A stretch of DNA of 64,000 nt from the NCBI GenBank assembly GCA_024704765.1, contig JAKMXF010000222.1:1492400-1556399 (forward strand). Direction: 5' to 3'. Positions 3,457 to 39,747 of this stretch are shown piece by piece. The notes under the pieces were generated by a model that was not told the origin of the DNA, searched no databases, and saw only the letters and a program-made list of their open reading frames with translations. The DNA comes from Oopsacas minuta (taxonomy: Eukaryota; Animalia; Porifera). Numbering within the stretch: the first letter of the stretch is position 1; each line of letters begins with the position of its first letter. The translations under genes were made by a program, and so were the position numbers.

Positions 3457-5260
3457 TATATTATATCATTCAATTTCCTTAAAAAAACAGGGATCGCTAG
3501 TACTTTTTTAATGAATATTACAAGAATAATATTTTGTGAAAATATGTTTTTCCACTAGCCATATCATTATTCACATTGTCTAGTACATACTAGATTATCT
3601 CATAAGATAATGAGCATGACTGTTATTTACACATGAAGTAACACATGTTATAACTCTTTCTCTTGGTTCCCATTCTAATGTTGCCACAACAAACGAATAA
3701 TGAAACCGCAAATTACTCATCTATTTTTGATATCTAATATTCTTAAGTCAAATCTCTATACTACGTATGTATTATAATACAATTTTCACGGGATAATGCG
3801 ACTGTGAGGTTAGCGCAGTATTCAAAACGGACAACTTCACCCACTCTAAATTTATATTTGGATAAATTGACTACTTGTTCTAATTCTTTTAGTCTTTCGT
3901 CCCAGTTTAGTCATAACAATCACCACAATTGTTATGAATAATTCTTCTTTCAATAAATGCCTTATTAAATATTGATTTAATTATTTTTATATCTTTCCCT
4001 GCCAACGTATTAGCAGATAAGATGTAGAATTACCTTGATCTCACTTTGGCAATTTATTTGATGCCCAGGAACAGAAAGGGGAATATTTGGTAACATGTCT
4101 TTGTTAATACTTATATTAGATCATCCTATAGAATTCAGATGGCTCCGTGGCGTATTTGTATAAAACTACTAAAAGCCATTTTTATTTTATTCTTTGATGG
4201 ATTAATATAACTTAATTTGCTCTTTTTCCTTTTGTACCACTCCTCCCTACAAATCTTCCTCATTTCCACAACACTTTTTTATTTTTTGTTTAAATGCTTC
4301 ACTTGCTAATTTTGTAAAAGCAAATTTGAATACAGTAATTCTGTCATCTATATTAACGTATTTTGACCTGCGGCCTTTAGCCTAGTTTCGTATTTCAAAA
4401 TATTATGTTTTACTATCTTAAACCAATTCTACACTAGCGTCACTATCTCTTCGTTGATATCTTTGTCACTATATGATTCAATAAGGATGAGATAGATATA
4501 TGATTATTTGTCAATTTGTATATTTCATTGTGATGGATAAATAGAAATGTAATTCGTAATTTCAGTATTTTGCGGTTTCATTATTCGTTTGTTGTAGCAA
4601 CATTAGAATGGGAACCAAGAGAAATTCTGGGAAAAATTATTTTTGAAATTTGAGTCTAAATTGAAATTTCGAAAATACATAAAAGACGACAATTATGCCA
4701 TTTTTAGAACCCCATTGTGACTGTATCTTTCAGAATTTCATGATTATAGTAACATAATGGTATACATCCATGTCTCAGCTATCGATTGTTATCAAAATAT
4801 AATAGTTTGAGTTCGATTTGGGATATCAAATATCAATTTGAACTGACCCTACTTTTTGTAAAATGATACTCACCCCCTCCAATATAACTCTGACTTCAAA
4901 TTTGAATACTTGTATCTCCTCGAGTTTTAGGAATTTTTGGATGAAATTTAATTTACATAAACGTCCATGGGTCACAAATATAGACACAAAATTTCAGATT
5001 TGTATTCTCACTTTCAGGTCGTCTTTTTTAATAGATAAGCGACCCTACTCGTCATGACAAAAATATATAGGTAAAAGTTAGAAATATTTAAGAAAATTAT
5101 ATTTTATAAGACGTTCAACACTCCTCTACCGAATGATATTAATTTCGGGTAATCTAATGAGTACAAGTAGGACAAATTAGTGATTGAAATGATCCTGGTC
5201 GAATATCCTGCAAATTGACAGCAGTCGTTTAATATAGATGAGTTAAAATCTCACGCAACA

Positions 5261-13858: not shown

Positions 13859-16800
13859 ATGGAAGTTGACGATTTAGAACAACAACTTCTTTCCCAGTTC
13901 AGATCTCTAGCCACTAGCGATAGAGATGTATTGATTACACAATTTCAAAAACTAATTGACGGACAAATGACAGACAGAGGTTGTGAATTCTTTCTAGACA
14001 TGACAAATTGGTGAGTTTTAATTATTTGAATTTATTCTGATATCCTACCAGCTGTTATCCTTTATTCCTCGTATTTTATATTTAGGAATTTACAAGTGAG
14101 TTACATATATCTGGATAGTTACACATGTCTGAATAAGAATTCTATCAACTCTTGTTAGGCTGCTGCTTGTGCTTATTATGATTATCAAGGTCATAACCAG
14201 TCCCTACCTGAAATGTCCCTTGTTGAAGATGTCACGATAGGAGAAGGAGAGTCTATAACTCCCAGTACACCATTCTCTAAAGTTTGGAGATTACAAAACA
14301 GAGGTTAGTTTATTCTGAGACATCAAATAATTTCAGAATTATTACGAATACATTTAATAACATTATTTTCTAGGTTGTGAAGCCTGGCCTCCAGGCTGCA
14401 GTATCAATTTTTGTTTAGGCCACAAATTCGGTGGAATAGATTACTTACCACTGCCTACCCTTGAGCCCTTAGAAGTGACAGAAGTGAGGGTATGTATGGT
14501 TTCTCCGCCGGAGTCAGGTATATTCAGTGGTCAATGGAGGATGAAGACTGCTGCTGGAAATATATGTGGAGGTTTGTGATTGTATTTGTATATTTTGTTG
14601 ATATTTCGTTGTTAGTGATTAATTTTTATATATTTTAACCGAGAAATCTGCAAGTAATCGCGAAAGGGGCCCTTGGCTCCTCTGAAAAGTGCCCGTTAGT
14701 GAGCTTGTATCCCTATATACTGCTCTAATGACAATAGTGTTTGATCTGGAAATTGTCTAAAGGACTCAGAGTTGGAAACGTGTTGTATAATTCCTCTAAT
14801 ATTAAGTTTATTTATTAGCATAGAATGCTTAATGAAATATGCTATTATCTGAGAATATTAAACCCACAGAAAAGATCACTAATGAAGGTCGGAAAATCAG
14901 GAGTGCAGCTCGAGCTCTCCATATTCCACCCAGTTACCCTGATTAGCTGTTAGAATATAATTCTCTATCATCTTTGTAATATCACCACAAATGTTTGCAG
15001 ATATAGATCTGAAATGTGGTTATATCAAATAGATCCTACAGCTACAACACATAACAGATTACCCTGACTAGCAATCAATGTGATAAATATATCTACTGAC
15101 TGCAGTCGACATCTTGTATGAGTTGTATCTCTAACCCTCTGAGGAAATCTAATCTGTATTAATGGTGTAACTTTGAGGGTGATCACGTTAGAGATAGCAA
15201 ACATTGTTTCGATGCAAATATTGTCACCTTTGTTATGTGAGTATTACAATGCTCTATCTTAATATATGCTATAATCCTTGCTCTTTGCTCTAAATAGATC
15301 TAACTTTATGGAGACTAATGAGTTTCTGCAAACTTTCCTTCCAATACTACTAGCTAGTGTTCATGGTTGAATATTTGTCCACTGTCACGATTTTAGAATA
15401 AACGGCCTTGATCTTGATTTCATTTTCAAAATATTATACAATGTTCTTGATATGTGTATATCGCACCTGTCTTAATAGGTAACATGTGTTACGATAGTAT
15501 TATACCAGTTCTATGTAGATAGAAAATTGTATAGTTCAATATAGTACGTATAGTTTACTATAGCCTTTTGGCTATTGTTGACAGAATAATAGATTCTTCC
15601 GGGAGCCGCACATTAACGTACAAGCAGGATTAGAGAATATGATCAAATATGAATATATAACTGAATACCCCGCACTATGTTGATGTAAAAATATAACTAG
15701 ACGACAAAAGGTGTGAAATGTTATGTTTACATACATTGGCGTAATCCGTTCGAAAAAGTGGGGGGATGATGTATTATGCTATAATTATCAATAAAGGTAT
15801 AAATTCAAGATTTAGTAATTGTGGTGTCAGAAGTACACAAGGCTATCTACAACTCCTTGAAAAGACTTGAAAAGAAGTCAGATATTTTGATACGTTTCTG
15901 CTTAAATGCCATAGAAAACGATTATAAAATTATAATTATATTTAATATTTTAGTTCTGTTACAAATACTCTAATTATAGAATTCTATTGACATAATTATG
16001 ACAAAGATTTGCTTTAAAAGTCTTCGGAATATACTCCTTTAGAGTATCCTCTGACCCAAATGGGGGGGGGATATATGTATGCAGCATTCCCCCGCCCAAA
16101 AAGCGGGGGGATGATTGTATGGAGCATCCCCCGGGATTTACGCCCATGTTTACATATGTACTCCCGAAAATGTATATATGTTCCGTTTTTCATATATTTA
16201 AAGTACTTAGCGCATGCGCTGAATTAATGGCATAGTACTTTAGTATAATAGATACACATTTGTAAGTAATTATTATTTATCAGTTAATGTTTACATTTTA
16301 TGTTCTGTTAGCACCAGAGAATTTGATATTTGGAACTTCTACTCGGGTTTCAACTCGATGACTAACTGAAATCTAGCTTATTGAAGTATGATAATTATAA
16401 TTAATAAACATCTCAATGCACAGTGGTATAATCCTAGACATCCCTTTTCAAACAGTCATTTCAAAAAATTCAGAGACATTAGTGGATTAGTTTAGGGTTG
16501 AATTTCTAATTAGACATGTTTCTTGGGATATCTTATGATCCAGTGACACACTTAACATATATACAAACATTTCTTGTTTCAAATAAAGCTAAAGTCACCA
16601 AATGCCTAAAATTACTTAAGGGAACGCTAAAGAGTATCTTTTTACAGCTGTGAGAATGTGGGGATCGTTTTCACCTGGAGAAGTTTGGTAAGCATTATGG
16701 TAAAGAGCCTTTCAAAGAGGTTATTAATGCTCATCGAGGGTAAATTGAAAGATCATTGATCGCTTCTTTCAATTCTACGAATAGGACACCTCTTGAACCT

Positions 16801-19800
16801 ACCCTGCCAGCTCTACAGCTCATCAGATGTTGCTGAACCAGATTTAGCTAATTTGCTTAACTCTAACATCGACCCCGCCGATTTTACAATGGAAAAATTA
16901 CGCAAAGTACTTAACTTTGCATTGAGATGTTATTTTGATGTTTATTAACTATCATACGTCAACAAGCTAGATGTCAGTTAGTCATCGAGTTGAAACCGAG
17001 TAGAAGTTCCAAATATCAAATTCTCTGGTGCTAACAGAACATAAAATGTAAACATTAACTGATAAATAATAATTATATAATAATCCAAAAAATGGCTGAA
17101 TTAATTAATAATTACTTACAAATGTGTATCTATTATACTAAATTACTATGCCATTAATTTAATTTCACCGCATTCGCTGAGTACTTTTAAATACCGCCGT
17201 TTTTTATGTTAATTGGACTGCGACTGGTAGATTTCGCACGGCCATGCAGGCTGACTGACGGACGTACAGACTTCGCACATAACCCATGCAATGTAACTTC
17301 TCCCTATAGGAGCTGTAATATAGTATTAATTTCCACCTTATTGATATCATATTTTTCTGACATGAATATGCATGGTGTAATTGATATCCAATTATCCATA
17401 CATACTTACAATCTACCACGTTAGCTATTTGCTCTTGTGTTATAGAGAATTGGATACTCCCATTCCGCATAACTGAGTATCCATTTGGCGTTAAATCCAT
17501 AAGGTGGAGAATATTATACTCCCAGCAAAATTTGAGTATATAAATGTGTGTTAGGCATACACATCTTTAAGTACTTATATGTGTATAGCTACCCTTTTAA
17601 ATTCCACTAAAAAGTTAAATGGCTCTTTTCATTGTCATCTATGCGATATCTTGCATCATCTGCTTTGCGTATAGTATTCCCATACCTGCGGATTCTACCA
17701 CCACCAACTCTTGGCTAGATGGCACTACCAAAGAATTATTGTTTAATTTTATAACATCTTTACATGAGGGAGTATATCCTCATTATCAGTTGAATTATTC
17801 TCTTGAGTGTGATGCCTGTATAAAGATTGTTGATTATATAATTGCTGATGCGTCTAGCAGAAAAGTATTTAATGACGACCTCCTTAATTTCATGACTAGT
17901 ACTTGTATCGAAATATTGAGTATAAAAGAATATAATGGTAAAGCAATGTGTCCTAACATTACAAAGTTCTACGGTCCAATCCTATGGTATAGTATTGTGA
18001 ATAGTGAGTTTTCTGGTGAAAATATTTGTCAGCATTTGTATCTTTGTCCTAAAAAAAAAGAGAAAGATACTCCATGGATTCCACAAACTCCTCCTGAACC
18101 AAGTTACCGAATAACAAATCCGAACTCTCCAATATTGCCCAAGTCGAATACTGATGACGCTTCAATAATTAAGTTCTTACACATTTCAGATTTCCATTTA
18201 GACCTGGAATTTAAACAGGGTGCTCCCTCTACCTGTGATTTCTTCTTGTGCTGTCATGCCTCAATGACAGGTAGCAATCCTGCTGGAAAATATGGAGCAT
18301 ATGGATGTGATCTGCCAATGACAACAGCTAATCTTGTGTTGAACCGTTTGGGAACGCTGCCAGGTATCGATTTCGTTGTCTATGGAGGTGATAACCCGCC
18401 TCACGATATGTGGGCGGAGACTGAAGAGAGTCAAATGGTTGTAGAGGCTCTTGTGATAAAAATGTTCAAAGAAAACTTCCCAAACACATCCATCTATCCT
18501 GTTCTTGGTAATCACGAGTCCTATCCTGAGAGTGAATACCTGCAATCTCTCTACATGAATCAGACTGAAGCGCTGGCACGTATGTGGAGCACTTGGGCTC
18601 ACTTCCCTGATAGTGCGATTAAGTCAATGGGTCACGGAGGATACTATAGTGTAATTATTAAACCTAAACTCAGACTAATAGCTTATAACTCAGATTACGG
18701 ATATCTCTTTAACTTCTACGCTCTGCTCAATCACAAGAACCCTGCTTACGAAGAGCACACTAAATGGCTACATAATACACTAACATATGCTAAGAATAAT
18801 GGAGAGAAGGTGCTCTTGGTGGCACATGTTCCTCCTGGTATTGGTACAACTTCTGCTGAATATGGAGAATGGTTCATCAATGCTACTAAACCATTTTCTG
18901 ATATTATCGTTGGACAGTTATTTGGTCACACCCATCAAGATCATTTCAAAGTTGTCCAACAGAATGGGAAGCCTTTTGGATCTATATTGATTACTCCCTC
19001 AATCACAACATTCGCGCATCAGAATCCGTCTTTTAGAATTTACTCTATGGATCCAACAACCTACGAAATTCTAGATTACGAACAGTATTTCTTGAACCTT
19101 ACAAAAGCTAATGTTATTGCGAAGGAAGGCAAAACACCACAATTTGAACTAAACTATTCTGCTAAGAAATTGTATGGAATGAAAGATCTCAGTCCTGATT
19201 CATGGTGGAGTCTTGTTAATCGATTCAAAACAAATTCTACACTACTCCTAAAATATGTTGACAATGTGTATGCTAGGAGTAAAGTACCATCTTGTGATGC
19301 CAATTGTAAGAAGATGACAATTTGTGAATGTGAGTACACAAATTATCTTGATGCGGAGGAATGCTCTTTTAATTAGACCCCTTGCGTAACCTGGTTAGAC
19401 TGATTAGATATATCATTGATTTAATAACCAGAATGACTAATCGTTTCATTTATCAAACTTATACGTGATTATATGTGTGAACTATTATGTGTACAAATTA
19501 TCCGAATTAACACATTTGTAATATACTATAGTATTGAACAATATCGTGTCTAATAATACTCTTCTGTTATGTAGTAATAGTAATCAGGGCCAGTGTGCCG
19601 AACTTAATAAAAACTTGAACGATCCAGGGGAGCTAAGAAATGGTTCGACGCATATGTTAGTTTCAGTATTCTACTATAACTATTGAAAAGTATATAAACC
19701 CCTGCTGGCCTATTTCAGCTTTTTATCCTGTATGATCTTTCCTTTTGACTAGAAAACTAACGAATATACAAAAGCAAACAAACACAAAACACACCTTCAT

Positions 19801-22800
19801 TGGGTATTTATAGTAGGATTTTAATTTAATTAGTAAAATCTTACAATACAAACATAAATCTTACAATACAAACATACATCTTACAATACAAACATACATC
19901 TTACAATACAAACATAAATCTTACAATACAAACATACATCTTACAATACAAACATACATCTTACAATACAAACATACATCTTACAATACAAACATACATC
20001 TTACAATACAAACATACATCTTACAATACAAACATACATCTTACAATACAAACATACATCTTACAATACAAACATACATCTTACAATACAAACATACATC
20101 TTACAATACAAACATACATCTTACAATACAAACATACATCTTACAATACAAACATACATCTTACATAAACAATTAATACATTTTATGAAACCTACTTTGA
20201 ATAAATAAATTAGCTATCCATCATGCCCAAAATTCGTAGGACCAAAAAACGACCTCCTGAAGGATGGGAACTGATCGAACCCACGCTGGACGAGCTGGAT
20301 AAGAAAATGCAAGACGCAGAGATGGACCCTCACGAGGGAAAGAGAAAGTGTGAATCTCTCTGGCCGATTCTTAAAGTTCATCACCAGAAATCACGCTATT
20401 TATATGATTTGTACTTCCGCCGTAGAGCAATCTCTCGGGAACTCTATGATTACTGCATAGCCCAGGGATACGCAGATGCGAACCTAATCGCAAAATGGAA
20501 GAAACCTGGCTACGAGAATCTCTGTTGCCTTAAATGTATCCAAGCAAGAGACACAAACTTCGGCACTGCATGTATATGCCGTGTCCCTAAGAGCAAGCTA
20601 GAAGAAGGAAAGATAGTCGAGTGCATTAGTTGTGGTTGTAGAGGTTGTTCAGGCTGAATACTCTACTCTATTGGATGGAATTCCAATTTATTTCATTTGA
20701 CTTCTATTTGTGCTACTATTAACTTCTCATTAAACAAACTTCCTTACTAAAATACCTTTTAATTCATTGGCCCAAAGTTGGGAAGGGAGGCCCGATCAAC
20801 TCTAATCTATATTATTAAATTGCTATTGTTGTCTGTTTGTCCGTTGTCAAGGAAAGGATTTATGGAATGTTGTATCGAATTCGTATTTATCAATTCTGAG
20901 ATGTCGCATACTTTTGTATTTATCGTGTTTATCAAGAAAGTAAAACATTCAATAAAATTGAGTAAATGTATCGAATATGCTAAATCCAAATTTTACACTT
21001 TTGAATTATTCACATGTAATGGGAATGCATTAGTAATCAGCTGTTTATTCTTGTATGTACTATTCGTATAATCTCATACAATTATGTATTTGTGATAAAC
21101 CTGATTACACATCAACTTTCATATTTACAGAGAATTTTTGCTAGAAGTTGAGTTCTCTCAAACAATTTATGTTTCTGGTCAAGTATCGCTTCCTCTAGCA
21201 TTTTTGCCTCACTTATCAGCTGATCCAATCTCTGTAGACATAGTTCTTCAAACTCCTCCCCCTCAGTTAAGAATTCACTCCATTTATGAATTATTTCCCT
21301 CGAGCTCTCTTCCACTGATCGTATCACTGTTTCTACTTTTTTCCTTAGAATAGCAGGGTCTATTTGTATCGTTTCTTCTTCTGTTTGGACTATTTCACCT
21401 GAAGTAATGTCATAATTCACCGATCCCATCTCCCCACCTGTACCGGTTAATACATTTTGATCGTCTATGGGTTGATCCCCGTTACTTAGCGTTAACTCAG
21501 GCTCTCCATTCGGATCAACTATGATATTCTCCGCCATAATAATCACGTATAATTTCAGAGAGCACTATTTCTCTTTTATTTATTATCAGAGAATTATTCT
21601 ATAATGAAAGCCAGATTGTACAATTTTGTTATTTTACAATTGAGATTTTTGACAAATTATTAATTGTGAGATATTTGCTATTCCTAGTTGGTCACCTAAA
21701 TTCGTCCATTTACAAATATCTGGGCGTGAACTATGTAATACACGATCTGGGTTTATTAATTAGGACACTATCAATCAGTACCGGATTTAAGAGTTTTCGG
21801 AGTGTGCGGCCGAACAGGGCCCCCACAACTCAACGTCATTAATTTTATTCAGACTGTAATTCTACTTTAATCACTATAAATCTTATGCTAGAAACCTTTG
21901 AGTTGTCCACATCAAATTCCAACCTGATTAATGATTTTGCGACCAGGAAAGCACGCTGATCTTATAGAGTAATTATAGTTATTATGTTCATGATATATTT
22001 TGTGTAACTAAATAATGAGAGGACAAGTCCTGCCACGCTGCCACTGGGCGAAATAGGCCTTCAGCTAGGGGGTACTAGTTATAGGGTTGAATTTTACATA
22101 TGCAAAATTTGAATACAATAAATACAAGCATTCTAAATTAAGGAATGGGGACAGGTGGCCGAACCGTGACGGCTTTGAATTGGCTTCAGGGCCCCGGGAA
22201 TTGCTTTCGAACAGGGCCCCACATACCTAAATCCGGCACTGCTATCAATATAAACTTACTTATCCTCAGCATGGTGCATACGTACACGAAACAACTATGT
22301 TACACAACTGTTGCATGCAGAGAGCGTTTTAAAGGTTCGATACTATCTATCAGAAATGTATTTGATGATGTGGGATTTTGATCGAGAAATATCCTTATTT
22401 AATATCCTAATTTGTTTTTATAAATTTACATACATACTCCAGTTATCAAGCAAAGCAATGCATAGTCAGGTTGAAATATAGTTGCGTTTACAAAGGACGC
22501 ATTAATTATCCCAGTATATTTATTGGGAATTATTGAATTGGGTTATCCAATATTATCCTAGATACGTATCCGTATTACAACTTGACCTTCAATACTAACA
22601 CGAATTCCTATCTACTTATGTTGCAATATGCAACTGGTGAATGAAGTATAATAAGTTGCAGTCATTGCTAGAGAAATACTGAGTATCCTAGAGGGGGACA
22701 TGATAAAACAAATGTGAAACAGATTCTCCATTGTGTATCCGTCTGATAGCTTCTGCTAGCATTTTACTGATGTCAATAACCTTTATTTTGCTAGACGTCT

Positions 22801-25800
22801 TTATATTGTGCATCTGAGCTATACTGTTAGTAGCCACGAACTCTTCCAGTTTAGACTCACTAATCTTCTTTAGTGAGTCCCCGGAGAATATACCATGTAC
22901 CACGATAGCATAAACCTTAGAAGCCCCAGACTCTAATAGCTTGTTCCCTGCTTTCAACATAGTACCACAAGTATCTGCTATGTCATCTACAAGTATAGAT
23001 ATCCTCTCTTTCACATCACCCACAAGTACCATTCGTGATACTTCATTAGCTTTCACTCGCTCTTTGTGGATCAAAGCGAAACCAATTTGTAACTTGTCTG
23101 CCAGAGATGTCACTCTCTTTGCTCCCCCCGCGTCAGGTGACACTACCACTGCGTTTTTCCAATCTGGTATGTTATCGCGAATGTATTTGATTATCATTGG
23201 TTCAGCATAGAGGTTGTCTACTGGAATATCGAAAAAGCCTTGAATCTGTGAGGCATGTAAATCCATTGTGATAATGTGGTCTGCTCCCGCTACTGATAAC
23301 ATGTTAGCCACGAGCTTAGCTGTGATGGGAGCTCTGCTCTTATCCTTCTTGTCTTGTCGGGCATATGGGTAGCAGGGAATAACTGCTACTACTCTCTGAG
23401 CTGAAGCTATTTTGCACGCGCTTATCATTATCAACATCTCCATCAAGTTGTCATTGACATCTCCTGCTCCACTCTGTACGATGTACACATCTTCTCCTCT
23501 TACAGACTCTCCTATCTCGACACAGGTTTCCTGATTAGCAAATTTGGAGAGTGAAACTTTCCCGAGATTGAGAGACAAATTCTCAACAATATCCCTCGCG
23601 AGGTTAGGGTTGGAGCTGCCACTGAACACTTTGATATTCATCCTGTCGAAACGGCTTTTGTAACACGTAGCTGAAGTAAATTACTAAATGGTTTGTAGTG
23701 TACAATTGACTGCATACAATTTATCGTACTAAGGGTTTATAATATACGAGATTTCACCTGTGCTCTGTAGTTACACAACCTTAGTTACGATCCTTTATTT
23801 TACGATTTCTATGAGAATCATTTGGTAGTCATGCGTTAGATGTGGGTCGAATCTATTTTATGGTATAATCATTATTTATTGTATAGAATAGATTATGGGT
23901 ATGTAATCACCTGATGTTTTATTGATTATTCAGTTCTTACTTTTACTTGAATCGTTTTTAAAGAAATTCATGCTCTGACTAATTTCCTGTTTACTTTACT
24001 TGTTAGTAGGCTGTTATGTATATTTTGAGATACTTGTATTAAGTAATACCATGGACACACATATCGTAGTATTTGGAGGAGATATAGAATTCTGAGATTA
24101 TAGAATTCTTGAGGAGAGTATAGAATTCTGAGATTATAGAATTCTTGAGGAGAGTATAGAATTCTGAGATTATAGAATTCTGAGATTATAGAATTCTTGA
24201 GGAGAGTATAGAATTCTGAGATTATAGAATTCTGAGATTATAGAATTCTGAGATTATAGAATTCTTGATAATTCAAAATACTTTTAATTTTTTATTTGTT
24301 TTCTAAAATTTTTTCTCTATTTTAAATTCACGTTATATTATGTATATTTTATCTATATATTGTATACTTACATGTTTGTTTGAATATTTTATTTTATGTA
24401 CTTTGTATTTATTTATTTTAATTCAGAAATTTTGTTTAATTAAGACACAATTAGTTTAGAGAGAAAGAGATGTTTTTATGTTTACAACGATGGATCGTTT
24501 AATATACTAACGTTTCATGTTTACTTGCACACTCCCTGAAACTCTTATTAACTTTATTAAAATCAATAGAATGTTATTCAGTTATTTTGTGAACCAAAAG
24601 TGAGTGAATAATTATCACTTTGTATACTGTATTTAATATAGGTGAAATATTGTAATCTGTAAGGCACATTACATCTCTAGAGTATAGATAGTTGAGTATT
24701 ACAATGAACTACATGTACAATTTGTGTTACATACTTAAATCTCAGAATTCTATACTCTCCTCAAAAATACTACGATATGAGTGTCCATGGTATTACTTAA
24801 TACAAGAATCTTAAAATACTGCGCAACAGGCCTTTGTTTATCCGAACAACAAAGGGGAACGCGGAATTTGACCCAAAACTTTCACGCGATAATGTGAGAG
24901 GTGAAGGAATTTCTATCTAGTTAGTTACTAGCATGTCGTTACGTTTTGTATTTGTGCATTCGGATTAGTGTCTATCTTGACCTGTCCTTTTTCGGGGAGC
25001 TTTCTGCTACTCCTGGTGTTGGATGGCGTATTTGAAGCGATATTCTGGTAAGGGAAAGAATTTTGATGGAATTAATTAAGATTCATATTTAGGAATTTGG
25101 GTCAGAATATTCAGTATTAAATTTTTTGTATAATTCCTACATCACTTATTTTTGAGTCAAAATCCGATTTTGGGTTTAATTCCGATATTTTTGGGCCTAA
25201 TTCCAGCATCTCCAACAAAGCTACAACATTTGTCAAATGGCTAAAATGTGAAAAAAGAGCTATTGCATGAATATTACTGCAGATTATATATAATTCAATG
25301 TTACACCTGTTTACATGATTCTCATCGTTTATAGTTTCATAAATCTATACGTACTCTCTTATCCTATGATATTATTATTGCTATTCACCAATCCGAACAC
25401 TATGATCTTTAATTGGTACATGGCTGTTCGAGTGTCTAATAAAGTGAATAGGTTAATTCATTTAAGTTTATTTTTCATATTTCATCAGTATGTAACCAGT
25501 ACCCCTGTATGCCATAACATATATATATATATATATACATTTTAGATACCATCTGGGTGATAATCTCTGTAGAGGTAAATGGTATTCTAGGTGTAACTCA
25601 GCAGATGAACGCATTACCTATTGGACAAAAAATTACACCGAATTCTCAGAGAAACCCATTTGCACCTCCAACCAGCCAAAATATACAAAGTGAGTACAAT
25701 CTCTTAAATATTTTCTTTTATTTAAAGATTAGTAGTACAGCATGATTGATTCCACCCTAAAATATAATTCGTCACTATTACATAGCACTTCCTATTTGTA

Positions 25801-27177
25801 TAGATTAAAAGAATAAGTAGAGGTGGAGAAAACATTTAATAACTTCATTGCTGAACTACCCCCTAAATTCATTTTATGTCCACTGGCCATGTGTCAGCCT
25901 AACAGATGTATTTTGAAAATGCTGCAAAATATGGTTCAATTGGAAGATTTTGAAAAATCTCAGTAATATTCTAGAAATGTTGTATTTGCCATAATACCAT
26001 TAATATTTTGCTGTTTTTGGTACACTATGACATGATTCCATGAATACTGATGTAATTTTAACATATCACACTCTTTTGCATTAAATATTCAATCATTTTG
26101 CTACTGCTCCATGAATCAAATGATGAAAAATATTTCGAAATTTACCTTAAAATTAGTTTCCCTATTTATTCCATGGAAACGGGAAAATGCGAGTATAACC
26201 GAAATTCTAGTAACAGACACGATTACAAGCTACCCAGCGCAGCTCTTCCCGTTATTAAATGTTTTAATTCACATCTACGTATAATAAACTTGCACCTTAT
26301 TATGTTTAGTTTTGAACAATTCTCAAGAACTGCTCACGAACTCTAACTCAATATCACCGATCAAGCAACCAGACTCTACCTCAGGACATGCTGCACCTCC
26401 TCCATCCCCAATGGTGATTATACTTTCTTCATATAATTACGGTATTTGTATAGTAATGATGTTCAGAACTTTCGAATAATCTGCTAGTATATAGAGCTGC
26501 TGATATTTCTATCAAACACTAGCATTACTTTCATCTTCCAGTACTAGTATAGAATCTGGACATTGCAACATAGCAACGCTTCTTTCTCCTTTAAGTAATT
26601 TATATTTATACGTAGAGAGCATAATTTACCCAAGAACGGGAATTACAAACTGGCCTCTTCGTATTATGATCTTCTCGGTGACAAATATAGCTGTATATTC
26701 AGTAGGTCGTGGGTGACTTAATTTCATGAAGCCTAAACCATTTGGATTCTTTCGTATACGGAAACCTGTTTTGCGTTTTTTGTCAAAAGCATTACAGACG
26801 GTATCTGTCTGTAATGTCACTTTAGGGATCGAATCACTTCCTGGTCACATGAGTGCAGTTTGGTAGAAGTATTCTTCGGACAAGATGAGTCAACAAATTA
26901 TCAATTGTTTACACCCCAGATAGACAAATCCGATTGTTTTCTAATTGAATTACTAATAAATAATTTTACACTAACTTGACGACAAAAACCCCGATTTCAA
27001 CTGTATACATGTTATGTATTTGCATTTACTTTTATTGTATTCATTCAGAATTCACAATTCGGAACATCTTTACAGTTCCACAATTCCCTTTTAACACAGT
27101 TAAACCAAGAGACAATTAGTACCCTGATGGAAGAACCAACAGAACTGAACACAAATGAAGATACATATTACAGCTAG
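13859..27177 (+). CDS. ILRUN: ILRUN / C6orf106 (UBA-like + NBR1-FW domain), 7 exons, 293 aa
   Basis: Exons 13859-14010, 14086-14095, 14159-14303, 14374-14571, 25546-25689, 26310-26413 and 27049-27177 join in frame (882 nt). Reads [14 protein letters not shown]...[21 protein letters not shown]...[11 protein letters not shown]...[14 protein letters not shown]...[14 protein letters not shown]|[21 protein letters not shown]. The last two exons are less certain. Confidence 0.92.
16196..17193. mobile_element. ~1-kb foldback/MITE with ~185-bp TIRs
   Basis: 16196-16380 is the reverse complement of 16964-17193, apart from a ~40-bp indel. The degenerate interior has no intact ORF. Confidence 0.75.
17200..17330 (+). 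repeat. Dispersed repeat (HINE/DINE-like end); copy 2 at ~39450-39552
   Basis: Both copies share TAGATTTCGCACGG...TGACGGAC.TACA...CGCACATA.CCCATGC...CTCCCTATAGGAGCTG. Confidence 0.65.
17619..19376 (+). CDS. SMPD1: Acid sphingomyelinase-like (signal peptide, saposin-B, metallophosphoesterase), nested in ILRUN intron 4
   Basis: Hydrophobic N-terminus, saposin cysteines (CDAC...C...C...CQHLYLCP), [38 protein letters not shown]. Intronless, 585 aa. SMPD1 versus SMPDL3 assigned from the saposin domain. Confidence 0.9.
   Translation: MALFIVIYAISCIICFAYSIPIPADSTTTNSWLDGTTKELLFNFITSLHEGVYPHYQLNYSLECDACIKIVDYIIADASSRKVFNDDLLNFMTSTCIEILSIKEYNGKAMCPNITKFYGPILWYSIVNSEFSGENICQHLYLCPKKKEKDTPWIPQTPPEPSYRITNPNSPILPKSNTDDASIIKFLHISDFHLDLEFKQGAPSTCDFFLCCHASMTGSNPAGKYGAYGCDLPMTTANLVLNRLGTLPGIDFVVYGGDNPPHDMWAETEESQMVVEALVIKMFKENFPNTSIYPVLGNHESYPESEYLQSLYMNQTEALARMWSTWAHFPDSAIKSMGHGGYYSVIIKPKLRLIAYNSDYGYLFNFYALLNHKNPAYEEHTKWLHNTLTYAKNNGEKVLLVAHVPPGIGTTSAEYGEWFINATKPFSDIIVGQLFGHTHQDHFKVVQQNGKPFGSILITPSITTFAHQNPSFRIYSMDPTTYEILDYEQYFLNLTKANVIAKEGKTPQFELNYSAKKLYGMKDLSPDSWWSLVNRFKTNSTLLLKYVDNVYARSKVPSCDANCKKMTICECEYTNYLDAEECSFN
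19837..20165. repeat. 20-bp minisatellite (TTACAATACAAACATACATC) x ~16
   Basis: Head-to-tail units with no spacers; a few AAATC variants at the 5' end. Confidence 0.97.
20223..20657 (+). CDS. BUD31: BUD31/G10 splicing factor, nested in ILRUN intron 4
   Basis: [22 protein letters not shown]...[16 protein letters not shown]...CRGCSG. 144 aa, intronless. Confidence 0.98.
20806..20975 (+). mobile_element. Helitron-like short repeat; related copies at ~39180-39341(-) and ~63690-63816(-)
   Basis: ATCTATATTATTAAAT...TTGTTGTCTGTTTGTCCGTTGTCAAGGAAAGGATTTATGG...TATTTATCGTGTTTATCAAG matches the reverse complement of 39180-39341. Confidence 0.7.
21112..21537 (-). CDS. TEX12: TEX12-like synaptonemal-complex central-element protein, nested in ILRUN intron 4
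   Basis: C-terminal 70 aa (VETVIRSV...WSEFLTE...[34 protein letters not shown]) align by eye without gaps to the mammalian TEX12 helical core as I recall it (LEKDLNDV...YAKLLSE...[34 protein letters not shown]). ATG taken at MAEN. Confidence 0.65.
   Translation of the reverse strand: MAENIIVDPNGEPELTLSNGDQPIDDQNVLTGTGGEMGSVNYDITSGEIVQTEEETIQIDPAILRKKVETVIRSVEESSREIIHKWSEFLTEGEEFEELCLQRLDQLISEAKMLEEAILDQKHKLFERTQLLAKILCKYES
21776..22241. mobile_element. hAT-type MITE, 466 bp
   Basis: TIR CAGT(A/G)CCGGATTTA. Perfect 8-bp TSD CTATCAAT at 21768-21775 and 22242-22249. Confidence 0.92.
22688..23641 (-). CDS. PRPS1: Ribose-phosphate pyrophosphokinase, nested antisense in ILRUN intron 4
   Basis: [75 protein letters not shown]. 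317 aa, intronless. Confidence 0.97.
24012..24828. mobile_element. Foldback element with ~90-bp TIRs and internal tandem array
   Basis: 24012-24100 matches the reverse complement of 24738-24828. Ends are TGTT...AACA. Array of 16-bp AGAATTCTGAGATTAT and 20-bp AGAATTCTTGAGGAGAGTAT units at ~24086-24270. Confidence 0.8.
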
Positions 27178-28527
27178 GAAACGGAATTTTATATCTCAGA
27201 TGTTTGAGTTTAATTTCATTGAAATAAGCTGTGTGTTTTCCAATTATTTTCGATCATCTAATAGCTACAGAATGCTAACCGAAATCTGTTACTTGTATAG
27301 TAAACATGCTATTAATTATTGGTAGCACCTACAACTCAATAGTTGAGTACTATTCTGTATGTTATTGACTCTATACAGCCCAACTGGGTATATTATTACT
27401 ATATTAATTGAGCAAGTTCATATTCATTTTGGGAGCATTGTATACCAAACATATATACAAGCGTGTAACTTGGAGCGATCCATAGTGCAAGGTATAGAAT
27501 TAAAATACTCTAAGTACACAATTGACGAACTTGGAGTTAGGATTCAGCATGCTTGGCTGCCTTTGCAGTTGAGAGAAGTTTCTACGAGATTCCTATAATT
27601 GTGACGTTGCATTTATAGAATTAAACATTCACATGTACGCTAGGCTCCGCACCAACTTTATCAGATACCTAAATGCCCTGCTAGCTGATATCAGACAATA
27701 TCAGTTGTAACCTGCTGATATACCGTAAATGCTACATTTATCGATATCTGTGTAACAACGTGTAACTTTCGATTTATTATCTAATAATCTCTAGATTAAT
27801 AATTAACTTAACACTATACATGATATATAATTATGGATAATTCTATCAATTTTGTATTCTTTACTTATTGAATACATTCGTATGTTTATATTCCAGCAGG
27901 TAAGTCATCACTGATTCTTTTGTATGACACTAAAAGTATGATTGTTTGTCTTGTGAGGAGAGACAGCTGAAGATAGGCTTTATATTTCGTACGTATTCTC
28001 TTAAATAAAGACTCATGATGTGCAATTGAGTTGTAATTTGTATGAATATTCCGTTTTTACAAAAGATCTCTAGATATATTAGTAGTACGTACATACGCGT
28101 CCGTACTGTCCTCATAGTTCCTACAGTGCCACCTGACTGAAAATGCTAATACAATTTTGATCTATTTGTTTGAGTAATGCAGGTTTAATTCAACAGGCTG
28201 GTAGTTAAGGGCTGTTGTATAGTTTGAAACATGTTTTCATATAGTTTCATTTTGCATTGTACAGTCAAAACGATCTGCTTTTCTTGGCTAGAGGGAGGTA
28301 ATTATCCAACCCAAAGATGGTCCAAATAATATTCTCGATTAGATTGATGAAACCTTTTCACGAGGTATTACTAAATATTGAAATATCTACGAATTTGAGT
28401 GATTTATTTGATTATTAGCACCAATGTGTACATTATTTTTAATCAATATATTACTAAAATAATCTATTTGAACCAAAACAACCCTGCTATTTGATATAAG
28501 ATAAATTCATGTTTTAATTTAGACACT

Positions 28528-30213
28528 ATGAGCACTAATTCCAATCATACTCCACTGAAGAGGAATGACAGTGATCCAGATTCCTCTCTTAACGATTCTG
28601 ACAACACACCTCTCCTCTCCTACATCAAGAGCAATGCTAAGTCTAACTACACGGGAGCAGAGAGTGAGGGAAAGACCCTCTCATTTGGAACAGATAGTGT
28701 GATGTTTCGTAGTTGGAATCTGAATACTGTGCCTGCTAGTGTGAGCAAGCGTTGGATAGGAGGACCAGACCAGAGACGCTGGTGGTCAATCCGCATCATG
28801 TACTTCACTATGTTCCTGTCAAGTATGAGTTTTTCTATTATTGTCTCTAACATATGGCCATACCTCATAACCATGGATAAACATGCATCTACATCTCTCT
28901 ACGGGTGGATTGTAGCAGCTTTTTCATTCGGGCAACTAGTTGGATCGCCTATCCTCGGATTCTGGGCTAATTATCGACCTGTGAGGGAGCCTATGTTTGT
29001 ATCTCTAATAATCTTCACTTTATTCTCCTTTCTCTACTCGTATTGTGACGCATTTTCTCCTGAAATAGCTCCGTGGGTTATGTTAGTGTGTAGATTTCTG
29101 ATTGGAGTAGGAGCTGGTAACGTATCCGTGGTCCGCTCTTACATAGCTGCTGCTACAACTGTGAGGGAGCGTACCAGTGCTATGGCTAATGTTAGTGCTT
29201 TCCAGGCACTCGGAATTATCCTTGGTCCAGTTTTCGGTATAGCATTCTCTCCTCTTCATTACCCAGGCCTGACTATCCCTGCTATTAAGTTCCAATTCAA
29301 CATATACACAGGTCCAGGCTATTTAGGAGGCTTCCTAGGAATTATTAATTTATTATTACTGTTATGTTACAAAGAAATCAGATTATTTAATAAGAGAGGA
29401 GAATCTATAAATCCTACAGTAAATGGGAGTTCTAATAGAGTTCTAACTCTACAGGATTCTTCTAAGAAATCTTCTCCTCCAGGTTATGACAAAATAGGCG
29501 CATTTGTGTGCATTTTCTTGTTCTTTTCAATATTCGCTGTATTCACTGTGTTTGAGACCTTATGCACTCCTCTTTCCATGGACGAGTTTGCCTGGACAGG
29601 ACAACAAGCTACTGTTTATAACAATATTGTCTATCTCGTACTTGGTATGGTAGCAATTAGTGTATTCATTATTATTAAGATTTTGAGTCGTCACATACAA
29701 GAACGTACTCTATTTGTATTTGGTCTTATGGTGCTTAGTATTGCGCTATTTATATTCATTCCTCTACCAGGAGAACCTCCTGTCGTTAAATACGAACCAA
29801 TTTATCCTAACGGTACATACATCAAGCCTAATGGGACTGAGGCGGTTGGGTGTGATTTCATTAAACACAACTGGTGTGAGGATGTACCGAGACTAGAACT
29901 ATGGCAGTTTATAATTGGAGCGTTATTTATGGGTATTGGGTTTCCTATTACTCAGGTAATGTCTTACTCTATGTTCTCAAAACTTCTCGGTCCCTTCCCT
30001 CAAGGATTAATGATGGGGTTTCTGACTGCTGCTGGGAGTCTAGCTCGCTCAATTGGTCCGATATTCGTCAGCTATGTATACATGCATACTGGACCACAGA
30101 TAACATTCGCAATTCTTGATGGCTATATCGGAATAGTGATAATCCTATCTGTAATATTCTACAAACGTCTTGTACCATACAAATACACACACATACTTAC
30201 AAGTGAAGCATAA
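28528..30213 (+). CDS. MFSD8: Major facilitator superfamily domain-containing protein 8 (CLN7)
   Basis: RWWSIRIMYFTMFLSSMSFSII..IWPYL, CRFLIGVGAGNVSVVRSY, SKLLGPFPQGLMMGFLTAAGSLARSIGPIFVSYVY. 561 aa, intronless. Confidence 0.93.
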   Translation: MSTNSNHTPLKRNDSDPDSSLNDSDNTPLLSYIKSNAKSNYTGAESEGKTLSFGTDSVMFRSWNLNTVPASVSKRWIGGPDQRRWWSIRIMYFTMFLSSMSFSIIVSNIWPYLITMDKHASTSLYGWIVAAFSFGQLVGSPILGFWANYRPVREPMFVSLIIFTLFSFLYSYCDAFSPEIAPWVMLVCRFLIGVGAGNVSVVRSYIAAATTVRERTSAMANVSAFQALGIILGPVFGIAFSPLHYPGLTIPAIKFQFNIYTGPGYLGGFLGIINLLLLLCYKEIRLFNKRGESINPTVNGSSNRVLTLQDSSKKSSPPGYDKIGAFVCIFLFFSIFAVFTVFETLCTPLSMDEFAWTGQQATVYNNIVYLVLGMVAISVFIIIKILSRHIQERTLFVFGLMVLSIALFIFIPLPGEPPVVKYEPIYPNGTYIKPNGTEAVGCDFIKHNWCEDVPRLELWQFIIGALFMGIGFPITQVMSYSMFSKLLGPFPQGLMMGFLTAAGSLARSIGPIFVSYVYMHTGPQITFAILDGYIGIVIILSVIFYKRLVPYKYTHILTSEA

Positions 30214-30682
30214 TACACTACTAGTACATACACATAAGTGCAGGAGATTATACAGCAATTGTACTTAGTTGTACCAAGTTTATTTTTCAATTACACACAA
30301 ATCTGTTTATTTGTAAAGTTTGTAGATTATTGTGATTTTAATATGTAGTATATTTGTGATATAAATATAGTAAATTTCTATGAATATACATCACATGGCT
30401 AGTAACAATGGAAATTATGGGGGTTATGGCAGTATTCTTTGTATATGTGGATAATTTGAAAAGGAGACTTCCAAATTCGCACGAGCTGCAACACTTTCAT
30501 TTTTCATCTATTTTAGAAATTACACTAGTATTTTTGTAGTTGTTTAGCGGTTCGAAATTCCCCTAATCGCGAATTTGTAAATTTTAGATATCAGTATCAC
30601 ATATTGACTAATACTTCTACACTCAGATTGCAGTGCTTCTTGTTCTCTACTTTTCTATAATTCTATACTTTATTGCTGTTTC

Positions 30683-31050
30683 ATGCCAAGAGGAAGAGAA
30701 ATTCCCCTTACTCAGAGAGGACAGATAATTGGGTTGAGGAAGGACGGCCATTCATTAAGAGAAATCAGTTCATTGTTAGACATGAATATATCTACAATAC
30801 ATTATATAATCCTACACTGGGAAAATTATGGGACAATTAAAGACGAACACCGTTCAGGTAGACCGAAAATAATGTCACCACGAGCAATGAGGGTCCTAAA
30901 CTCATTTGTAAAGAAGAATAGATGGAGTACCTTGGATAAAATCACTAGTGATTTCAATAAGTTAGCTCTTATGAAACCTATCTCTGCTAATACAATGAGA
31001 AGACGATTGTATGAACTTAAATATAAACCATGTGTGTTGAGGAAGATCGC
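30683..31050 (+). mobile_element. Tc1-like transposase N-terminal (paired HTH) fragment; catalytic domain absent
   Basis: MPRGREI...RGQIIGLRKDGHSLREIS...RSGRPKIMSPR...ISANTMRRRL. No DDE region and no TIR pair identified. Confidence 0.8.
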
Positions 31051-38677: not shown

Positions 38678-39747
38678 CGTATATCTATACATAGCATATT
38701 ATAATCTAGACTTCTGTGCTGACATCATACTTAATAATTAATTTTAAGTGGTGCTTGTTTTGAAGCGATTTATTGGGGATTTATTCTTAACGAGCCTTTG
38801 GCTCGTCGCTTCGTGATGAATTCGGCGCATTGCGCCTCGAGGTATTCAACAGACAAACAACAATTGGGGGTTAATAATATTTTGATGTTGTTTACCATAT
38901 TCGGACTCAGCATACTCCAATACCCCAGGATAGTCGTTGAAAGTATGATTCTACCTCAATTTTGAAATTTATACTTTATATTCATAAAAACAACAATAAA
39001 TTTACATATAAGAAACTTGAAAATGCGAAATTCGGATTCAGCGTACTTACCTCTGGGTACCGTTTAGAGCAAGCCTGTACGTATATATTGAGATTTGGCT
39101 AATTTGTTTACTTTATATACATAAAATCAACAATAAATTTACATATGATTAATCCAAAAGTGTGAAATTCGGATTCAGCATGTTCGATATATTTAGTGAA
39201 GTTTTATTGAATTCTATTTACTTCCTTGATAAACACGATAAATACATAGTTATGGGACAATTTCAAAATTGCATACCATAAATCCTTTCCTTGACAACGG
39301 ACAAACAAACAGACAACAATTGTGATTTAATAATATAGATTAACCATACCAAAATGGTGTGAAAAATGAACAAAAAGGTGAAATATTAAAAAGAATTCGT
39401 ACCCTAAGTGAAAGTCTCCACCCCAAGAATGTGCACGTATGTTCACCAATTTTAGGTTAATCGGACTGCTAGATTTCGCACGGTCTGACGGACATACATC
39501 CGTCGCACATAGCCCATGCGATTAGGGCATCTCCCTATAGGAGCTGCAGTAAAATGTAAGTCTCAAATGTTTGCAGACTGGACTCATATTTGATTCAGCA
39601 GATCCAGACTCCAGCGTATTAAGGAATTCGTTCGAGATAACGGGCTCTCCACTTTTAATTTGCCATTCTCCCTTCAATTATGATCTCATTATTTATATAA
39701 TCACTACTGCATCACACAATAAATGCTAATTTATTATTTATCTTAAA

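Follow-up and report, generated by a model that had tools for sequence, protein, structure and literature searches.

Classical multi-gene nests of bilaterians include the human NF1 intron, which holds OMG, EVI2A and EVI2B, and the large intron of Drosophila dunce. In these nests several complete, independently expressed genes lie in one intron of a larger host, and the hosts are large genes with very large introns. In glass-sponge genomes nesting is already known as very common, Aphrocallistes vastus being the species for which it was described (Francis et al. 2023, PMC10282587); this bears out a remark in the original prediction for the present locus that nested genes had been reported in this group. 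A total of 2,432 nested genes (12.4%) were counted in A. vastus, and many are conserved; the annotation of Oopsacas minuta, which is known to under-call such genes, has only 83. About 60% of transcripts are single-exon in both glass-sponge annotations (PMC10282587).

The nest analyzed here lies in the ILRUN gene of O. minuta (genome size 61 Mb; assembly GCA_024704765.1, contig JAKMXF010000222.1), within a stretch of 64,000 nucleotides of that contig, referred to as the window. Like the NF1 and dunce nests it places several complete genes, probably expressed independently, in one intron of a larger host. Its proportions are different, with a host coding sequence of 0.9 kb, about 3.6 kb of guest coding sequence, an intron of 11 kb and two guests on the host strand. 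With the A. vastus nests it shares a compact genome, mostly single-exon guests on either strand and conservation between glass sponges. It differs from them in that the ILRUN host and its four guests are unmentioned in the main text of PMC10282587, and in that the O. minuta nest was hidden by the division of its host into two models in GenBank. Nesting as a phenomenon being already published, the main new result is the corrected gene model.

Exons and protein of the host gene

The seven exons of ILRUN join into a clean open reading frame of 293 aa, with GT-AG boundaries at all six introns. Two related glass sponges were available for comparison in independent assemblies, ENA ERZ25072730 (two haplotigs) and ERZ25072740, giving three contigs from two species. 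The host features are as follows.

13859–14010, plus strand: ILRUN exon 1, from the ATG; UBA-like domain; 86–92% aa identity in the two relatives
14086–14095, plus strand: ILRUN exon 2, a 10-nt micro-exon, ag/GAATTTACAA/gtgagt; completes a W codon and encodes NLQ
14159–14303, plus strand: ILRUN exon 3; 98% aa identity in the relatives
14374–14571, plus strand: ILRUN exon 4; carries the greater part of the NBR1-like Ig domain
14572–25545, plus strand: ILRUN intron 4, 10,974 bp, GT..AG, phase 1, with four guest genes inside
25546–25689, plus strand: ILRUN exon 5; adds the final strand of the NBR1-like domain; RNA depth about 3,500–4,600
26310–26413, plus strand: ILRUN exon 6; conserved block with AG/GT flanks; 79–86% aa identity; joined to exon 5 in RNA
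27049–27177, plus strand: ILRUN exon 7, to the stop codon; same end as the GenBank model; found in both relatives

The UBA-like domain is N-terminal (Pfam UBA_4, 7e-10 on the product of exons 1–4, P0165). The micro-exon is present in both relatives as GAATCTCCAA with the same flanks, and its inclusion gives DMTNWNLQAA, matching animal ILRUN. The sponge protein has both Pfam domains of the ILRUN (C6orf106) family, UBA-like and NBR1-like FW, and is 50–53% identical to arthropod and vertebrate ILRUN across about 200 aa. It also shares with the family a similar length, a disordered C-terminal tail and the intron at ...G/D. The micro-exon and the guest-filled intron set the O. minuta gene apart, as does the tail, which is conserved among glass sponges only.

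The original prediction had placed the end of exon 4 at 14571 and the start of exon 5 at 25546, in matching phase, and both sequence and gapless homology uphold this. The donor reads ...TGTGGAG/gtttgt and the acceptor tttag/ATACCATC, and the codon G/AT that intron 4 splits encodes D. Over 212 aa the joined protein is 50% identical to a vertebrate ILRUN, and the alignment crosses the junction without a gap (...NICG/DTIWVII... in the sponge, ...LYYG/DVIWVIL... in the vertebrate). The Pfam domain N_BRCA1_IG is covered over positions 1–108 of 108 in full-length ILRUNs and over only 1–97 of 108 in P0165, the annotated 170-aa protein, where exons 3–4 provide the match, so that exon 5 would supply the last strand of the domain. 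Exon 5 indeed aligns gaplessly to the residues that fill profile positions 98–108 in P0020 and P0047. Open reading frames of other animals (P0011, P0044 and P0091) read through into the intron at the same ...G/G position; judged by these comparisons, the phase-1 intron 4 of ILRUN is ancient.

A tblastn search with the joined protein gave a single match per exon in the whole window, as expected from the earlier claim that neither half of ILRUN has a second copy there. Homology, phase and conservation in three species confirm, at the level of sequence comparison, that the exons on the two sides of the guests share a reading frame and form a single gene. We infer from the same comparisons that exons 4 and 5 are joined in the mRNA. 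A spliced glass-sponge ILRUN was absent from the protein databases when these were queried with an exon-piece profile, the annotated 170-aa protein and exon 4; the matches were genomic ORFs of the relatives and LOD99_998, none of them transcript-derived, which makes this an absence of data and not of the junction.

Guest genes and conservation of the nest

Four guests lie wholly inside intron 4, and each is one uninterrupted ORF.

17619–19376, plus strand: SMPD1-like acid sphingomyelinase, a single ORF of 585 aa; Pfam Metallophos and ASMase_C
19606–19611, plus strand: AATAAA, a putative poly(A) signal read from the sequence, 230 nt past the SMPD1-like stop
20223–20657, plus strand: BUD31, a single ORF of 144 aa; Pfam BUD31, 2.8e-67; 95–96.5% aa identity in the relatives
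21112–21537, minus strand: coiled-coil ORF of 141 aa, TEX12-like by language-model features only; 62–68% aa identity in the relatives
22688–23641, minus strand: ribose-phosphate pyrophosphokinase (PRPS), a single ORF of 317 aa; Pfam Pribosyltran_N/Pribosyl_synth; about 91% aa identity in the relatives

The ORF list, with Pfam naming three of the four, agrees with the original prediction on the positions, strands and intronless state of the guests, and the AATAAA was found where it had been placed. The GenBank model of the SMPD1-like gene begins only at 18264 and has 370 aa compared with 585 aa here. Its orthologues of 592–596 aa occupy the same place in the relatives and align from residue 4–5. 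Pfam returned nothing useful for the 141-aa ORF or either of its two orthologues, even at E<=10. The nearest ESM-Atlas clusters carry TEX12 (score 0.95, 225 of 256 features shared), and the name 'TEX12-like' is offered as a lead from this model-based likeness.

The synteny comparison with related species suggested in the original prediction was clear in its outcome. Both relatives have all seven ILRUN exons, including the 10-nt micro-exon, and the same four guests in intron 4, in the order and orientation seen in O. minuta. The intron measures 10,277 and 7,651 bp in the relatives, with an identical donor (GTGGAG/gtttgt) and acceptor (tttag/ATA). Alignment between species is limited to coding blocks, at 71–84% nt identity. 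The guests are thus constrained, keeping 62–96% aa identity in the two relatives while the adjoining non-coding DNA is no longer alignable.

An assembly artefact, in which unrelated DNA had been inserted between the halves of ILRUN, was considered for one reason, the unusual size of this intron relative to the other ILRUN introns (63–635 bp). Since the two relatives share the guests, their order and the splice sites, both mis-assembly and a recent insertion are excluded; the identical layout recurs on three further contigs, in assemblies of two other species. Moreover, DNA contigs of runs X1–X3 cover a 6,000-letter stretch on the acceptor side at single-copy depth and span 25546, although these runs derive from the same sample as the O. 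minuta assembly. Refuted by synteny, the artefact has a negligible probability. The central claim of the original prediction, a 10,974-bp intron with four complete genes, two on each strand, stands on homology, on completion of the domain, on the identical splice sites and gene content in the relatives, and on the RNA described below.

Transcription across intron 4

Four O. minuta sequencing runs were used, none of them labelled RNA-Seq; X1–X3 proved to be DNA and X4 RNA. Reads were compared with a 6,000-letter stretch on the acceptor side of the intron, which takes in BUD31, the 141-aa ORF, PRPS and exon 5, and the loose ends considered are 24 of 249. Discrete peaks of word depth in X4 stand on BUD31 (14,000–31,000), the 141-aa ORF (1,600–2,200), PRPS (5,000–46,000, with a transcript end near 22440) and exon 5, against an intron background of 10–30. 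These three guests are transcribed. An exact-sequence lookup of BUD31 returned the genome record only and no RNA contig. On the upstream side of the intron, X4 contains 84% of the words sampled from 14300–20299.

Exon 5 is spliced to exon 6 in RNA: past 25689 a loose end continues with 30 letters identical to the start of exon 6. At low depth, an RNA contig of 881 nt runs unbroken from 24693 to 25573, showing that a low-level unspliced precursor extends from intron 4 into exon 5. Depth in intron 5 is 0–1.4, which shows that the background comes from RNA and that contaminating DNA is not its source. The contig end at 25573 is the k=31 graph fork expected for a splice partner ending in ...AG and differing at position -3. 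Exon 4 (...GGAG) fits this fork, but so would every other donor that ends in AG, and a spliced leader could be one of them.

These data bear on the GenBank annotation, which represents ILRUN by two models, LOD99_998 (170 aa) and one of 133 aa with a non-conserved first exon:

25024–25048, plus strand: opening exon of the 133-aa model in GenBank; probably an erroneous call, with no conservation in either relative

Taken at face value, the annotation would mean gene fission, with a 170-aa N-terminal ILRUN fragment, terminated by a stop codon shortly after the exon 4 boundary, and a separate 133-aa C-terminal gene that has this first exon of its own. The deposited annotation is RNA-informed and leaves the halves unjoined, and no read or contig in the 6,000-letter stretch and the loose ends listed, and no database protein matched, links 14571 to 25546. 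Against fission, the NBR1-like domain would be cut before its last strand. In addition, the read-through tail past exon 4 differs among the three species, O. minuta having a single extra residue before the stop and one relative a tail of 17 residues, yet splice sites and phase are identical. The 25-nt exon lacks conservation, its RNA depth equals the intron background (10.7), and no joint from 25048 to 25546 is found among those listed. The annotated exon (...TCTG) does not fit the fork at 25573, and the RNA entering exon 5 starts upstream of it, the contig being unbroken from 24693. Fission is therefore very unlikely, and the undivided seven-exon gene is retained below.

The original prediction had also suggested that the intron may act as an operon. 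Transcription from the host promoter would then yield one long precursor, from which the SMPD1-like gene and BUD31 are excised by spliced-leader trans-splicing together with cleavage and polyadenylation, while cis-splicing would join exons 4 and 5 in those precursors that are read through. Several observations are in line with this. Spliced-leader trans-splicing is present in glass sponges (PMC10282587), AG acceptors lie 4 nt (SMPD1-like) and 10 nt (BUD31) before the start codons, and a TAG-CT motif precedes BUD31 in all three species. The BUD31 RNA contig appears to start at about 20211, at the TAG 10 nt before the ATG, a rough position taken from bin depths. Low-level RNA covers most of the intron, and the arrangement is stable over three species. 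Spliced-leader operons of nematodes and tunicates likewise have same-strand tandem genes with AG near their starts in an organism that trans-splices.

Nevertheless, two of the four guests are antisense and so cannot derive from the host transcript; under either reading they require promoters within the intron. All cistrons of an operon lie on one strand under one promoter, and here only the SMPD1-like gene and BUD31 could qualify. Intercistronic spacers are expected to be short, roughly 0–400 nt in nematode and tunicate operons, but those of the sponge are 0.8–3 kb: the SMPD1-like ATG lies 3,047 nt past the donor, and 846 nt separate the SMPD1-like stop from the BUD31 ATG. The latter spacer is about 282–438 nt in the relatives, and spacers range from 0.3 to 4.5 kb among species without conserved sequence. 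The 'first cistron' of the sponge would moreover be half a gene. BUD31 depth is about seven times that of host exon 5 (BUD31 and PRPS are both deeper than the host exon, by about 7–10 times), and single-copy stretches of the intron reach about 0.2–0.6% of BUD31 depth. Among the loose ends listed, no leader-bearing read and no polycistronic RNA was seen at the guests. AG near a start codon was dropped as an acceptor signature, as it showed no enrichment over random ATGs: in a crude test on ORFs of >=200 aa within the window, AG occurs <=12 nt upstream of the start in 8 of 14, compared with 60% at all ATGs. No operons are reported from hexactinellids (PMC7986045).

The operon reading is thus disfavoured and unlikely. 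Its narrower form, in which at least some of the SMPD1-like and BUD31 mRNA comes out of the ILRUN primary transcript and this release competes with the cis-splicing that joins exons 4 and 5, is just as doubtful. Were it true, no operon-like unit would have been reported from a sponge before this intron.

The explanation that we consider probable, with good confidence, is an ordinary nested-gene cluster: one seven-exon ILRUN whose ancient intron 4 has grown and hosts four unrelated, intact and conserved genes. Each guest would most likely be its own transcription unit with a promoter within the intron, and guest 5' ends may be formed by the spliced-leader trans-splicing of glass sponges. The host polymerase would pass through all four guests, and the spliceosome would join 14571 to 25546.

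Implications for glass-sponge gene models

Three public gene models are corrected. LOD99_998 and the 133-aa orphan become one ILRUN of 293 aa, and the SMPD1-like protein is extended from 370 to 585 aa. With two same-strand and two antisense guests within a single intron, the locus is a convenient one for tests. It poses the question of how, in a spliced-leader animal, the host polymerase gets past the acceptors and poly(A) signals that lie within the intron. The ILRUN nest is also a clear, three-species case of the under-calling of nested genes in the O. minuta annotation, and such under-calling bears on claims of gene loss drawn from the O. minuta genome.

ILRUN across its fourth intron

Lookup of the exact sequence of the BUD31 ORF placed the window on JAKMXF010000222.1 of assembly GCA_024704765.1 (O. 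minuta, Hexactinellida). The rebuilt ILRUN model has seven exons:

13859–14010, +, ILRUN exon 1
14086–14095, +, ILRUN exon 2
14159–14303, +, ILRUN exon 3
14374–14571, +, ILRUN exon 4
25546–25689, +, ILRUN exon 5
26310–26413, +, ILRUN exon 6
27049–27177, +, ILRUN exon 7

When joined, these give an uninterrupted ORF of 293 aa with GT-AG at all introns, and no second copy of any exon was found in the window. Exon 2 is a 10-nt micro-exon (GAATTTACAA; GAATCTCCAA in both related glass sponges) with the flanks AG/GTGAGT. It completes a W and encodes NLQ, yielding the conserved WNLQ. As in the original prediction, exon 4 ends at 14571 (...TGTGGAG/gtttgt) and exon 5 starts at 25546 (tttag/ATACCATC), the split codon G/AT encoding D in matching phase. 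The joined protein showed 50% identity over 212 residues to a vertebrate ILRUN (library entry P0047) and 53% identity to that of a horseshoe crab (P0020), both alignments being gapless at the 14571/25546 junction. Full-length ILRUNs cover positions 1–108 of the Pfam N_BRCA1_IG profile and the product of exons 1–4 reaches only position 97 (1–97), so the last strand of the domain is predicted to come from exon 5. Judged by sequence, the intron at this ...G/G position may be old, in agreement with representative-library ORFs from other animals (P0011, P0044 and P0091) that continue beyond the same point.

A 65-aa exon 4 query against the representative and word-indexed libraries retrieved the relatives' genomic ORFs P0006 and P0334, whose contigs are ENA ERZ25072730 ctg83220 (second haplotig ctg83185) and ENA ERZ25072740 ctg126215. 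In both relatives, OGG1, a cullin and ILRUN exons 1–4 are followed by an ASMase (592–596 aa, +), BUD31 (+), a 135–137-aa ORF (−) and PRPS (−), and then by ILRUN exons 5–7 and an MFS transporter. All seven ILRUN exons, the disordered tail included, have 74–98% aa identity to those of the relatives. The intron 4 splice sites are the same in the three species (donor GTGGAG/gtttgt, acceptor tttag/ATA), at intron lengths of 10,974 bp in O. minuta and 10,277 and 7,651 bp in the others. The comparison of related species envisaged for dating the insertions thus recovered the same four-gene nest, and since gene order and splice sites are common to all three, the nest is older than their split. The same layout in independent assemblies of two other species excludes a mis-assembly. 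The initial observation was confirmed, and a single ILRUN gene whose intron 4 hosts four genes is supported.

Alignment of the window with the relatives was confined to coding blocks, at 71–84% nucleotide identity; the non-coding DNA of the region is too diverged to align. As an exception, a stretch of about 220 nt 3′ of the ILRUN stop (27178–27396) retains ~80% identity to both relatives; it may be a conserved element of the 3′ UTR or some feature not yet recognised.

GenBank splits ILRUN (13859–14579 / 25023–27177) into LOD99_998 (170 aa), which reads one codon into intron 4 before a stop, and a separate downstream 133-aa model. That these are halves of one gene is a new result of this analysis. 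The 25-nt first exon of the 133-aa model (25024–25048) is not conserved in the relatives.

The genes within intron 4

Four uninterrupted ORFs lie between exons 4 and 5 in the predicted strand layout of + + − −:

17619–19376, +, SMPD1-like (Pfam Metallophos + ASMase_C)
20223–20657, +, BUD31 (Pfam BUD31, 2.8e-67)
21112–21537, −, 141-aa TEX12-like ORF (ESM-Atlas neighbours)
22688–23641, −, ribose-phosphate pyrophosphokinase, PRPS (Pfam)

The first was assigned as SMPD1-like because its two domains come with a signal peptide and an N-terminus that is cysteine-rich and saposin-like. The GenBank model (370 aa from 18264) is without the first 215 residues of this 585-aa ORF. The missing part (17619–18263), comprising the signal peptide and saposin-like region, is conserved in the relatives, whose 592–596-aa orthologues the ORF matches from residue 4–5; this correction is likewise new. 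The AATAAA at 19606–19611 was read in the sequence as originally noted.

The adult RNA run shows expression of the 141-aa ORF, which has 62–68% aa identity to its counterparts in the two relatives. A Pfam search with it and its two orthologues to E ≤ 10 gave no match. The closest ESM-Atlas clusters carry TEX12 (score 0.95, 225/256 shared features), which suggests a lead and not family membership.

Several repeats were observed in the intron. A 20-bp tandem repeat (16.4 copies, 99% identity) at 19838–20165 lies in the spacer from the SMPD1-like stop codon to BUD31, stopping 58 nt short of the BUD31 start codon, and does not align to the relatives. Just 3′ of BUD31, a 34-nt motif at 20831–20864 (second copy at 39277–39310, minus strand) is a short repeat dispersed at very high copy number, with a mean DNA depth in its 200-nt bin of 36,000–98,000 against ~100–350 for single-copy sequence and many differing flanks as loose ends. 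Between the 141-aa ORF and PRPS, 21750–22349 is repeated elsewhere in the genome, as indicated by DNA depth 5–50 times single-copy and several variant joints; GC-rich pieces with GGCCC are also found near 14660. The ~800-bp element at 24021–24818 carries terminal inverted repeats of 54 nt that are 94% complementary and encloses a 16/36/52-bp tandem array (24076–24265). Its DNA depth is 4–9 times single copy, and it looks like a multi-copy MITE-like transposon.

Transcription of host and guests

Four read runs of the same O. minuta sample matching the region (X1–X4) were compared with 20150–26149 by word depth. X1–X3 were taken to be DNA because their depth is flat (~100–350). X4 is an RNA run.

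Word depth in RNA run X4
BUD31: 14,000–31,000
141-aa ORF: 1,600–2,200
PRPS: 5,000–46,000
ILRUN exon 5: 3,500–4,600
Intron 4, single-copy parts: 10–30
ILRUN intron 5: 0–1.4

The sequence at the loose end after 25689 matches exon 6 over its first 30 nt, so the exon 5–6 splice predicted from conservation is real and X4 is able to report splices. An 881-nt X4 contig (depth 9.4) is unbroken from 24693 to 25573, indicating that RNA into exon 5 begins 5′ of the annotated exon at 25024–25048. The X4 bin of that exon is at background depth only (10.7), and no joint 25048→25546 occurs among the joints listed. The contig end at 25573 is precisely the position of a k=31 graph fork if the abundant spliced form has the same two nucleotides, AG, ahead of exon 5 and another one at −3. 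The exon 4 end (...GGAG) is compatible with this position; the annotated exon end (...TCTG) would put the fork at 25574, which rules it out as splice partner of exon 5. The fork fits any AG-ending donor, a spliced leader included, and is consistent with exon 4 as partner rather than proof of it; a 14571→25546 joint is not among the joints listed. Because intron 5 is empty, the background in intron 4 is RNA rather than contaminating DNA; its best interpretation is host precursor that splices slowly. In 14300–20299, half of which is gene-free intron, 84% of sampled words were present in X4.

In X4, transcripts extend from ~20211 to ~20712 for BUD31, from 20915 to at least 21879 for the 141-aa ORF and from ~22440 to ~23685 for PRPS, their depths varying up to 20-fold among themselves and relative to the host. 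In this they behave like individual transcripts whose ends are discrete. The two antisense guests run opposite to the host and must be driven from promoters inside the intron. On the simplest reading, all four would have their own promoters within intron 4, and ILRUN would be an ordinary gene whose polymerase reads through them before the intron is spliced out.

The original prediction had proposed that SMPD1-like and BUD31 may be released from the ILRUN precursor by trans-splicing plus cleavage, the intron acting as an operon. A low-depth X4 contig upstream of PRPS (23656–24104) has a fork, in 23656–23686 on the minus strand, that falls exactly on a TAG acceptor 42 nt ahead of the start codon. 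The PRPS 5′ end is therefore made by splicing, which would involve either a spliced leader or an intron in the 5′ UTR. The BUD31 contig apparently starts at a TAG that lies 10 nt ahead of the BUD31 start codon. Both ends fit spliced-leader trans-splicing as reported for A. vastus, in which ~4% of long reads carry a leader of ~37 bp (PMC10282587). No leader was seen at these genes among the loose ends listed. In a crude test across the window, AG was no more frequent near ORF start codons than near ATGs overall (8/14 vs 60%). Trans-splicing would make an operon mechanistically possible for the two same-strand guests. Nevertheless, the spacers are long and variable, the partner guests are antisense, BUD31 RNA is 7-fold above host exon 5, and no operons have been reported in hexactinellids (PMC7986045). 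The operon is improbable; nothing in the data requires it, and the mechanism is not supported.

Nesting in glass sponges

The main text of the O. minuta genome paper (Santini et al. 2023; PMC10280926) makes no mention of nested genes, trans-splicing or operons. For A. vastus, Francis et al. (2023; PMC10282587) counted 2,432 nested genes, or 12.4%, of which many are conserved; they found only 83 in the O. minuta annotation and blamed the annotation method. Single-exon transcripts make up ~60% of both glass-sponge annotations (12,409/19,578 and 9,872/16,340; PMC10282587), so intronless guests follow the norm, and their lack of introns is no sign of retroposition. The ILRUN nest is of a kind already known from glass sponges; its novelty is the corrected annotation.
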